Positions 15,031-18,100 of a stretch of DNA of 64,000 bases are shown here, one piece after another (positions within the stretch are counted from its first letter, which is position 1; every line of letters starts with the position of its first letter). Made by a program: the position numbers and the translations under genes. Under the pieces are notes generated by a model. The model was not told where the DNA came from and did no database searches. It was given only the letters and a program-made list of their open reading frames with translations. Where the stretch lies: NCBI RefSeq assembly GCF_001194135.2, contig NC_068997.1:8072392-8136391 (forward strand), given 5' to 3'. This DNA is from Octopus bimaculoides. Its lineage: Eukaryota.

Positions 15031-15129
15031 TTAGAAGTGTGTTTGCTCTGTCATTCCATTTAACAATGCAATAATTGTATCAATTTTTTTATTTACATTT
15101 TCCATCTGAACACGTAGCCCCTCCTCAAT
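15031..15129 (-). CDS. TRPM: TRPM gene A terminal coding exon 28 ([32 protein letters not shown])
   Basis: ttattgcag acceptor, phase 0, continues the coiled coil, TAA at 15033-15031; AT-rich sequence with AATAAA candidates follows (e.g. 14839-14856). Confidence 0.8.
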   Translation of the reverse strand: MEEGLRVQMENVNKKIDTIIALLNGMTEQTHF

Positions 15130-18100
15130 CTGCAATAAATAAGTGAGATTTTCCTCAAAATGGCAAGTCATATTGGGTAATGAAGTTCTAGATATACTAT
15201 GTCAGACTAAAACATGAGATAGTCATGGCTGGATTCTTCTGATCATGGATTATAAATCATAGGTTGTAATCTTCTGTTTGATCAGAACTAAAAAGAACTA
15301 AGCAACAAAATATTAAAGCTCTTCTAATACAAATATGGCTTGACAATTAATCAGTATTACAAAGGTTATTCTGGTTGGTGGAAGGATATATTTTACGATC
15401 GAAGAAAGGAGTTGGGCAGAATTTTGGCCAGTATAATCTGAAGAATTACAAAGTATTTGCTAAGAAAAATAACTCAAGTAAACCAGCACCATGAGAAGAC
15501 TATGTTTTACTAATGATATCTTTAGTTATTATACAGGTTCATCTTCCAAACTTTGTTTTAAAATTTGAATCTATTTGTTCTTTTTCCTCATAAAACTAGT
15601 GAAGATGTATTGCTTGTGCCTAAGAAACAATGGTACAACCCCTTCACAATAAAGCTGACCTTAGTCCCTATAACCATTGTATTTCTAATTATTTCTTCTC
15701 TTCATCACTTAACAGACCAATCTTCTGCATCTATGTCTCTAAGAAATTCTAACATTCTCTAAATTATTATTCATTCAGTCAATAATTTCATTTTGAATTT
15801 GGAGAAAAAGAAAAAATTTTACTAAACAATGACTGAATAAAATTTTACAGAACTTTTCCTATTAAAACTGAAAATAGATTAAAAGCAAGAAACAACAAAC
15901 CTTTTCTTCAACATTACGTCGTAATTCTTCAACCTTCAATGATAATTGGTCAATTCTGGAAGAAAAAAATACATTAAAAGTCTTCATTAAAAACTACGGA
16001 TGCAATTTTTAATGAAAACCTTTAAATGAATCAGAAACTTAAAAACAAAATAGTTCGGAACATTGATAACTCTTTTTTTTTTTGTTATTTGATGGCACTT
16101 CTTCACACAGCTGGACAATGTGTATGGATGAGCCTATGTTTCACTGTGGATGTTTTATTTATGTTTAGAAAGCATATTTAACTTTAAGTATCTTGTGTCC
16201 ACTATCTGGACATAAGATTATCCCAAATAATTGAGAAATTTTATAGCAGTAGAATAGTATTATTTCCAAAGACATTTTTTATTTATTCAATCCCATATAA
16301 CCAAGGACAAGTAGCCATCTCCCTAGAAGCTGTTTGCTGATCCTAGATGCTTTTACAAATTTTCAACTTTAGATTCTGATTTTAAATTTTGCTGCAATTA
16401 CCATTACCCTTTATCCCCCATGGTGTAGATAAAATGTACATTGGGAGAGAGACTGGCTCAGATTGGTGGACCCAACTGAATCATACAAAACTGGCACTGA
16501 GTCTATTCCAAAATTCCTATTAAATAAGGCAACAAAATGGACGAATTATTAAAACATCAGAGAAAATGCCTTGTGGTATTTGTCCTGGCTCTTTACCTTC
16601 TGAGTTCAAATCCCACCAAGGTCATCTTTGCCTTTCAACCTTTCAGGGTCCAGTCTTATACAGGGATCGATGGTAATGACTAATCCCCTCCCCTCTAAAT
16701 GTCTAACCTTCTGACTAAATCAAAAATTTTAATTAAAAGTGGAGAAATGGCTGAGATAGTAATAATACCAAAACACATTGTTTATAATATTTTATGCCAA
16801 ACCTACTTTTCTTATTTCTAGATTTAATAAAATGAACATCACTAATGAACTGGTATCAATTCATCCCTCTTACTCCAGACTTGTAATTTTTCTTTTATTC
16901 TAAGTTTGAATTTCATTGGAATCAACTTTATCCTTTTCTAATCAGGCCCAATAAGATTCATGTAATATTCTAAGGTATATTCAGTCAATTACTTCCAACA
17001 CTCACTCTTACAAGAATTGGTTCTTTTGCCAAAGTAAAAAATTGTTCTGCTGGTGAGAAAAAGATGAGCTTACTTATTTGATGATGAAATCACTTTCTTA
17101 TACAAGCTATCACTGACAGAAATATCTTTCTTTGATATGTAAGAGTCGACCATCTGATCTTCCCAGAGAATTAAATGTTTGCTTCCATTAACATCAAATT
17201 GTTTACCTGTAGAAGAAAGGTCAATTTGAAGTTAATTATATATACAATTGTACATAAGTTGTATTTGCTATATAGTGCATTGATAACACATAGTTAAGAT
17301 GTTAGTGGTTACAGAGTGTAGATGAACACAGATAAAGTTCTTGAAGAAACTGTAGAGTGTAAGGATAACATATGGATAAAATTTGTAATGGTAACATATA
17401 GAATGTTGCAGCTGAAAACTTTTGGGAGCAAATTTTATGAATAGAAGCTCTTTTTAACAATTTTTATCCTTAAAATCACCTGTGTAAATTACATAGGTGC
17501 AAAATTTATATGGGTTTTTACAGTAATACTATGTAGGTGTACAAATTTGAAAGATCTTATCTCATCATGATAAAAGAGTTATAGAGGTACAGAAAAGATA
17601 CTTACTAAATACAGAATGTTTTTGATATGCATTTCGTGCTTTCTTATATTGATAATGACAAAATTGGTAGATGTTACTAAGCAGTATAAAAGGTGGAGGC
17701 AAAGGAGGACGTACACAAAACTCATAGATAAGCTCATATCTTTGGAAGGACCAGTGGTGATAACTCATTTCCTGCACTTTTTGAAAACTAAAGCTAAAAT
17801 ACAAATCAATAAACATTACAGAATGATTATATATATATATAATTTTAAGTTAGTTGTTCTTAAATCAGAGACAAAATTATATTCACTATAAGCAACTGAG
17901 TGGGTAAATTTTATATTGTCAGTAGTTGTGGCATATAACTATATAACTAATCAAAACGTCACCATTGGTTTCACATTAAATATTGCCACAAGAAAATACT
18001 CATGTCACTTCAGACATACTAGCTTGTGGACAAGCATGAATGAAGACACATCAACATTATCTAGTGGTAAAAGTGAAACAAACAATAACTGTCTGACAAG

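Follow-up and report, generated by a model that had tools for sequence, protein, structure and literature searches.

The 64,000 nucleotides (nt) of Octopus bimaculoides DNA analysed here (NC_068997.1, positions 8,072,392 to 8,136,391; the window, numbered from its first letter) contain on the minus strand, at 15031..60229, a gene for a TRPM-beta channel of 1097 amino acids (aa). The gene consists of 28 coding exons with a coding sequence (CDS) of 3294 nt, and all exon borders are AG/GT (Table 1). Exons 1–22 were obtained by spliced alignment, in which residues 1–846 of the old RefSeq protein XP_014781150 matched the minus strand exactly, and the other six exons (23–28) were placed by hand, guided by the Octopus vulgaris orthologue and by paralogues. 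The resulting translation was letter for letter identical to XP_014781149.1 / XP_052830056.1 ('TRPM member-like 2 isoform X1', Octopus bimaculoides), and the window DNA was identical to the chromosome record CM046617.1 (GCA_001194135.2), N gaps included. The gene is already annotated and is already present in a published phylogeny; it is not a new kind of channel. The octopus gene ends directly after the coiled coil, without the NUDT9H domain.

A Pfam scan of the 1097-aa protein gave LSDAT_euk (7e-73), TRPM2-like (8e-42) and Ion_trans (5e-16), with no family C-terminal of these. In combination with an AlphaFold2 model made from a 52-sequence alignment (mean predicted local distance difference test score, pLDDT, 80; predicted template modelling score 0.68), the domain order was read as SLOG and melastatin homology regions (MHR) 1–4, the transmembrane (TM) segments S1–S6, the TRP helix, the rib helix, a terminal helix of about 59 residues and the stop. 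The features of a TRPM-beta channel were thus all found in the protein, namely the SLOG/melastatin region, a six-TM channel, the WSFQR and PPLPPPF motifs and a C-terminal helix. The tail of the model consists of one helix at residues 1008–1035, followed by a single unbroken helix at 1037–1095 that runs to the end of the protein. In this terminal helix, five to seven of the eight heptad a/d positions are hydrophobic in each 28-residue window; the helix would be of the kind that forms the central coiled coil of the tetramer. The protein ends 119 aa past TRP box 2, and the stop lies at the same residue in the orthologues of O. vulgaris (CAI9735207) and O. sinensis (XP_029646968, 1098 aa). These results agree with a first-pass annotation of the window, made from the DNA letters, which had described a channel of about 1097 aa with a TAA after a coiled coil; the interval given there for the end of the gene, 15031–17206, corresponds exactly to exons 26–28.

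Table 1. Coding exons of the octopus TRPM-beta gene and flanking features in the window
Feature	Position in the window	Strand	Content or basis
Exon 1 with start codon (ATG at 60229)	60164..60229	-	Spliced alignment
Exons 2–5	59978-59938, 57887-57797, 56410-56367, 54369-54285	-	Together with exon 1, poorly constrained N-terminal tail
Exons 6–11	53461-53281, 52210-52056, 50599-50425, 48939-48827, 47687-47620, 46423-46236	-	SLOG/MHR1-2 (LSDAT_euk, residues 108-361)
Sites within exons 6–11			Loop SAGLHAG (residues 175-181), S259 (= human TRPM2 Y295), R266 (= R302), R321 (= R358)
Exons 12–16	43649-43552, 42738-42604, 39769-39655, 37386-37298, 36142-36042	-	MHR3/4 and pre-S1 (Pfam TRPM2-like), continued in the next row
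Exons 17–20	33433-33208, 32163-32104, 29817-29792, 27913-27808	-	MHR3/4 and pre-S1 (Pfam TRPM2-like), remainder
Exons 21–22	26910-26782, 25592-25347	-	S1-S4; Ca2+-site residues E761, Q764, N786, D789
Exon 23	21689..21863	-	S5, pore helix, acidic selectivity filter
Exon 24	20507..20612	-	Shortened pore loop without both disulfide cysteines; S6 (TN to VH)
Exon 25	17606..17793	-	TRP helix (E964, fifth Ca2+ ligand), TRP box 2 PPLPPPF
Exon 26	17074..17206	-	Rib helix, beginning of terminal helix
Exon 27	15901..15955	-	Coiled-coil segment
Exon 28	15031..15129	-	Last part of coiled coil; TAA at 15033-15031
3' flank / intergenic DNA	2882..15030	-	Reaches to the next TRPM paralogue (its first recognisable exon)
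First exons of tandem downstream paralogue	2881-2762, 479-435	-	Match the N-terminus of O. vulgaris P0014

Sequence coding for NUDT9H was sought in the whole window by tblastn with 14 NUDT9H tails. The best match to the NUDT9H region had E=0.09, which is noise, and all better matches lay in the S6/TRP region carried by one of the query tails. Because the local Pfam copy failed on positive controls, missing Nudix/NUDT9H even in Lymnaea P0033 and Nematostella P0088, so that its negatives are weak here, a hidden Markov model (HMM) of the domain was built on 14 examples and picked out 50 of the 133 proteins in the set. Against all six-frame open reading frames (ORFs), this HMM gave a best E=39 in the window and E=15 in the O. 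vulgaris locus, which was searched together with its 10-kb downstream flank and is essentially gap-free (one 100-nt gap); the chromosome-level locus was also without a match. As a control, an HMM was trained with the molluscs held out and then applied to 48 mollusc NUDT9H fragments, 30 or 45 aa long, placed in the same database; 29 of them were recovered at E<0.05, compared to E=4.8 for the best genuine ORF. A Pfam scan of the minus-strand ORF pieces from the stop to position 7400 detected no family of any kind, a result that is weak with respect to NUDT9H. The first-pass annotation had stated that neither Nudix nor alpha-kinase exons precede the next gene downstream, which it called 'gene B', and the searches bear this out: tblastn and the validated HMM for the former, the Pfam scan for the latter. 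Furthermore, identity to O. vulgaris is 89% over the 1.25 kb past the stop, compared to about 91% in the neighbouring introns, consistent with a synonymous divergence (dS) of 0.11. A hidden conserved exon in the 3' flank was rejected on this comparison, the identity of the flank being no higher than that of the introns.

The position of the protein within the TRPM family was examined by structure searches and trees. In a sequence search of the PDB, the Nematostella TRPM2 (nvTRPM2) scored 578 bits, human TRPM2 (hsTRPM2) 561 and TRPM3 538, followed by TRPM1, 5, 7, 4 and 8 at 484-460 bits, with TRPM8 chains (about 460 bits) lowest of the eight TRPM types. A fold search returned the protomers of TRPM3, nvTRPM2 and TRPM7 at TM-scores of 0.75–0.8, with TRPM3 on top; as these three rank together, the search shows a TRPM protomer but cannot separate subfamilies. 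In a 267-sequence maximum-likelihood and Bayesian analysis, XP_014781149 is listed as TRPM-beta, and TRPS is represented in O. bimaculoides by another gene, XP_052825070 (Morini et al., 2026, PMC13143021, Table S1). Neighbour-joining (NJ) trees were built from corrected p-distances over 917-919 columns from SLOG to TRP (100-200 bootstraps), and their alpha and beta anchor accessions match the same Table S1. The alpha outgroup (Asterias XP_033642515, Hydra XP_012554388 and the Nematostella XP_048577808 cluster) was separated from beta plus a putative beta-like group with 100% support, and beta excluded the putative beta-like group, which was recognised by composition and not by accession, at 80%. 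Vertebrate TRPM2/4/5 were monophyletic (100%), with the octopus gene outside. The TRP segment of the octopus protein also fits the TRPM consensus. By sequence and phylogeny, therefore, the octopus gene is placed as a TRPM-beta channel (the TRPM2/4/5/8 group) and is neither a TRPS nor an alpha-TRPM. The first-pass annotation had proposed a phylogeny with TRPM2, TRPM8, TRPM3 and TRPS; the NJ trees, which contain no TRPM8 or TRPS, agree with the TRPM-beta placement.

Within TRPM-beta, a cephalopod-only clade was recovered at 100% bootstrap, comprising four Octopus paralogue groups and the sister transcripts P0022 and P0420. All its members lack NUDT9H, with only 100-152 aa following TRP box 2. 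P0022 and P0420, which are complete transcript assemblies (Logan contigs of 4.1 and 4.7 kb) and probably derive from non-octopod cephalopods, likewise end after the coiled coil; these assemblies include the Logan SRR3011302 contig of 4129 nt. The clade is nested in lophotrochozoan TRPM-beta beside NUDT9H-bearing proteins of Lottia, Lymnaea, Sinanodonta, Lingula and Intoshia, that is, it is bracketed by mollusc, brachiopod and orthonectid lineages that keep the domain. Because of this nesting, the loss is independent of the losses in TRPM8 and TRPM4/5, and the suggestion of the first-pass annotation that a TRPM2-like channel lost its enzyme domain independently of TRPM8 thereby gains support. 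The simplest reading of these data is a single loss of NUDT9H on the cephalopod stem, followed by duplication. An exhaustive search of representatives found NUDT9H-bearing relatives, and every one of those given a species name was a non-cephalopod, while 13 NUDT9H-positive representatives at about 30-38% identity were left without a species name. A word-indexed search with a mollusc NUDT9H query retrieved only stand-alone NUDT9 enzymes and missed the query's own parent, and is uninformative on NUDT9H-bearing TRPMs in cephalopods.

NUDT9H is reported to have been lost 'at least six times', none of the six losses being in molluscs, and non-vertebrate TRPM-beta channels are stated to have retained it (Morini et al., 2026, PMC13143021). 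The domain is also missing from many further TRPM-beta models of molluscs and hemichordates, and one study of TRPM2 evolution removed NUDT9H-less sequences on purpose. An explicit statement that cephalopod TRPM-beta lacks NUDT9H was not found in the literature: Morini et al. was the sole result of a full-text search combining TRPM, octopus and NUDT9, and a survey of cephalopod TRP channels does not mention the NUDT9H domain.

Residue roles were transferred by alignment from hsTRPM2 (Huang et al., 2019). All five residues of the Ca2+ site were kept, with hsTRPM2 E843, Q846, N869, D872 and E1073 corresponding to octopus E761, Q764, N786, D789 and E964. The selectivity filter, of the FGQ type in hsTRPM2, is acidic in the octopus protein, as in nvTRPM2. 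In the N-terminal site for ADP-ribose (ADPR), the ribose contact R302 and the phosphate contact R358 are retained as R266 and R321, and the clamp residue Y295 is replaced by S259. This last change is confined to the orthologue group, most paralogues having Phe. The beta5-alpha3 loop, TGG(T/S)xxG in hsTRPM2, reads SAGLHAG; it is altered across the whole octopus clade and resembles the TSGLRxG of TRPM4/5. Given the replacement of the clamp Tyr by Ser and the altered loop, the sensitivity of the channel to ADPR is likely to be weakened or replaced, and we lean to gating by Ca2+ or a different ligand rather than to classical ADPR gating.

The pore differs as well. The C996-C1008 pair of hsTRPM2, which is reported to be important in the human channel (Huang et al., 2019), has no counterpart, the pore loop (residues 905-930) being without cysteine and about 15-30 alignment columns shorter than in other mollusc TRPM-beta, and the S6 motif TN is changed to VH. 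Both features are found only in this orthologue group and are kept in O. bimaculoides, O. vulgaris and O. sinensis. In the alignment, nvTRPM2 likewise has no pore-loop cysteine pair. A NUDT9H-truncated nvTRPM2 is still gated by ADPR via the N-terminal site (cited in Huang et al., 2019); an invertebrate TRPM-beta can accordingly work as a channel without NUDT9H. Taken together, these residues suggest that the octopus protein is a tetrameric, Ca2+-dependent and probably Ca2+-permeable cation channel that would be unable to hydrolyse its own ligand.

The closest known systems are the invertebrate TRPM2 chanzymes of the same TRPM-beta clade (nvTRPM2, PDB 6CO7; Lottia XP_009055754; Lymnaea P0033; Sinanodonta KAL3836664). 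They share with the octopus protein the SLOG/MHR-TM-TRP-coiled-coil layout, the acidic filter YGELFL, an identical five-residue Ca2+ site and the equivalents of R302 and R358, whereas the octopus protein has no NUDT9H, SAGLHAG in place of TGG(T/S)xxG and Ser in place of the clamp Tyr/Phe. Under a strict definition of TRPM2, which includes a C-terminal NUDT9H, the octopus gene does not qualify. The TRPM8-like architecture proposed in the first-pass annotation holds for size and domain order, which fit the layout of both TRPM8 and TRPM4/5. Vertebrate TRPM8 is also a TRPM-beta channel of about 1100 aa that ends in a coiled coil and has lost NUDT9H, but this is a resemblance and not membership: TRPM8 is restricted to vertebrates and arose from a TRPM2/8 duplication within them (Morini et al., 2026, PMC13143021), whereas the octopus gene belongs to the lophotrochozoan branch and is no orthologue. 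The filter type also differs, and nothing points to cold or menthol sensing. Vertebrate TRPM4 and TRPM5 share with the octopus protein the absence of NUDT9H, the conserved TM Ca2+ site and the S-x-G-L form of the loop. However, they are a separate lineage in the vertebrate clade, with Gly at the R358 position and a monovalent-selective FGQ filter, where the octopus protein keeps Arg and an acidic YGE filter. The cephalopod paralogues (XP_014774531, XP_052830098, the O. vulgaris and O. sinensis homologues, P0022 and P0420) are about 50-68% identical, NUDT9H-less and have the remodelled SLOG loop; unlike the window gene, they keep the pore-loop cysteine pair, the TN of S6 and mostly an aromatic residue at the Y295 position.

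The ratio of nonsynonymous to synonymous divergence (dN/dS) against O. vulgaris was 0.43 for the whole CDS, 0.375 for the MHR, 0.33 for TM plus TRP, 0.51 for the last 97 codons and about 1.3 for the first 83 codons; the overall proportions of nonsynonymous and synonymous differences were 0.046 and 0.102. These values indicate that the gene is under purifying selection, yet relaxed for a channel. The N-terminal tail (residues 1-83; exons 1-4 and the beginning of exon 5, 54285-60229, minus strand) is largely disordered in the model, with pLDDT<50 at residues 1-9 and 41-85, and may not be under constraint at the protein level. The O. vulgaris model CAI9735207 (1082 aa) is without S6, an internal donor having been used in the annotation. 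A missing S6 in the O. vulgaris orthologue was rejected, for the exon is intact in the genome (locus positions 78721-78826) and 97% identical to the exon in the window.

Two other RefSeq products of the octopus gene, isoform X2 (XP_014781151, 914 aa) and the old XP_014781150 (918 aa), have exon 22 spliced to an exon derived from a sequence like a long interspersed nuclear element (LINE), at 23416-23520 on the minus strand (source ORF 23095-23547). The pore exon (21754-21870, minus strand) is then read out of frame, which gives a shortened product without a pore. This exon is either an annotation artefact or a case of transposable-element exonisation. Copies or fragments of LINE/RTE-like retroelements, with reverse-transcriptase and endonuclease ORFs, were observed at 3440-5110, 18425-19320, 22000-23550 and 61600-63500, two of them in introns of the channel gene, and CA/TA and trinucleotide microsatellites are plentiful across the window.

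The explanation that we consider very probable is that the window gene encodes a full-length TRPM-beta channel and is one copy of a family that arose when a cephalopod ancestor lost NUDT9H and the gene then gave rise to four or more channel paralogues, some of them in tandem. In such a course of events, the ancestor would have lost the C-terminal NUDT9H (ADP-ribose pyrophosphatase) domain, and the NUDT9H-less gene would then have multiplied, the window gene representing one of its products. Several points weigh against this explanation. At 13004-13485, 1.5 kb past the stop, 482 unread nt (a run of N) persist as a gap in the chromosome-level assembly, and their O. vulgaris counterpart is a region of about 6.9 kb that does not align, also without a NUDT9H match. 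All three orthologue models, from O. bimaculoides, O. vulgaris and O. sinensis, are computational predictions. The trees are distance-based and were made without TRPM8, TRPS or TRPM-gamma sequences; the node that joins the cephalopods to the other molluscs is weak (42%), as are the mollusc backbone nodes (42-66%), and a NUDT9H-bearing TRPM-beta could exist elsewhere in cephalopod genomes. The whole-CDS dN/dS is relaxed for an ion channel, and with its pore-loop deletion and unusual S6 the channel could be functionally impaired.

The short C-terminus could also stem from an annotation or assembly error, the true mRNA running on into NUDT9H exons in the gap, which is present in both assemblies, or further downstream; other RefSeq isoforms of the gene are clearly wrong. 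However, a NUDT9H domain of about 300 aa is too large for 482 nt, the validated HMM gave no signal over the 15 kb that follow the stop here, nor over 10 kb in O. vulgaris, and the coding sequence met next is the 5' end of another TRPM gene, a tandem paralogue in the same orientation. With the stop kept in three species, a 3' flank no more conserved than introns and every paralogue as well as two complete transcripts of the clade ending alike, such an error is highly improbable. A decaying or non-conducting paralogue, that is, a pseudogenising recent duplicate or a regulatory subunit, is somewhat less far-fetched but still improbable. The whole-CDS dN/dS of 0.43, the ratio above 1 in the first 83 codons, the loss of the cysteine pair, the S6 change and the replacement of Y295, the last three being specific to the orthologue group, and the membership in a multi-copy tandem family that includes SLOG-only genes would all suit it. 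Against it, 28 of 28 exons are open with canonical splice sites in O. bimaculoides, the O. vulgaris CDS is open and full length once the S6 exon is restored, and the O. sinensis model is full length. The TM and TRP region is the most constrained part, the Ca2+ site, the filter glycine and the TRP box are intact, and nvTRPM2 conducts without pore-loop cysteines, as the alignment together with established knowledge indicates.

Membership in another family was also considered. The first-pass annotation had offered TRPS (soromelastatin, the ced-11 family) as an alternative, and mollusc TRPS genes do exist, mislabelled 'TRPM2' or 'TRPM-like 2' by NCBI (Morini et al., 2026). TRPS shares the SLOG domain, the TRP-type channel core and TRP box 1 with the octopus protein. 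However, it is a separate family by phylogeny and its channels keep a C-terminal Nudix domain, catalytically inactive (Himmel, 2020; Morini et al., 2026, PMC13143021), for which reasons it was set aside; membership in TRPS would not account for the missing domain. The published assignment of the two octopus accessions to different families, the best PDB scores, which go to TRPM2 structures, and the nesting of the gene among anchored TRPM-beta sequences leave TRPS with a very slight probability. Alpha-TRPM channels (TRPM1/3/6/7 lineage), in which only vertebrate TRPM6/7 carry an alpha-kinase, are normally NUDT9H-less in bilaterians, and TRPM3 scores only slightly below TRPM2 in the sequence search (538 versus 561-578 bits) and is top in the fold search. 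But the fold search is not subfamily-specific, the published assignment is beta and the alpha anchors form an outgroup at 100%. The alpha placement, which the first-pass annotation had named as one finding that would overturn its view, did not materialise and is the least probable of all these alternatives, its chance being practically negligible.

The closest paralogue, XP_014774531 (68% identical), lies head-to-tail directly downstream of the octopus channel gene on the same strand, about 12 kb after the stop, and continues beyond the window. The RefSeq model of this paralogue starts 118 residues short, and exons for the longer N-terminus seen in O. vulgaris were located in the window (Table 1, last row). 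The 'gene B' of the first-pass annotation is a 169-aa RefSeq model with its ATG at 7310, within the 3' flank, and may be a mis-split 5' part of the XP_014774531 paralogue. Octopus also has many 'SLOG-only' proteins of 677-1423 aa (P0016, P0017, P0021, P0023, P0024, P0034, P0051 and P0112). These carry a TRPM-type SLOG about 50% identical to MHR1/2 of the octopus channel, in some cases in several copies, and no channel domain. These genes and the channel paralogues share chromosome-scale contigs.

A wider interpretation, which is possible but distinctly doubtful, is that the loss of NUDT9H on the stem, the remodelled nucleotide pocket and the tandem expansion beside SLOG-only proteins mark a radiation of TRPM sensors away from ADP-ribose and towards a new ligand or modality. 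If so, the pocket changes would be GG to AG plus Leu, with Tyr to Ser in the orthologue group of the window gene, and the most derived position in the radiation would fall to the window gene, whose pore loop is shortened and without cysteines. The loss would then be a seventh independent loss of NUDT9H and would contradict the retention of the domain in non-vertebrate TRPM-beta. As it stands, the octopus gene provides a clean protostome case of NUDT9H loss inside the TRPM2 lineage and a modest correction to the published count of losses. Since the Ca2+ site is intact and the N-terminal ADPR site half retained, it is a natural test of how invertebrate TRPM2-type channels function without a built-in hydrolase, and it bears on what the octopus-specific expansion of these paralogues senses.

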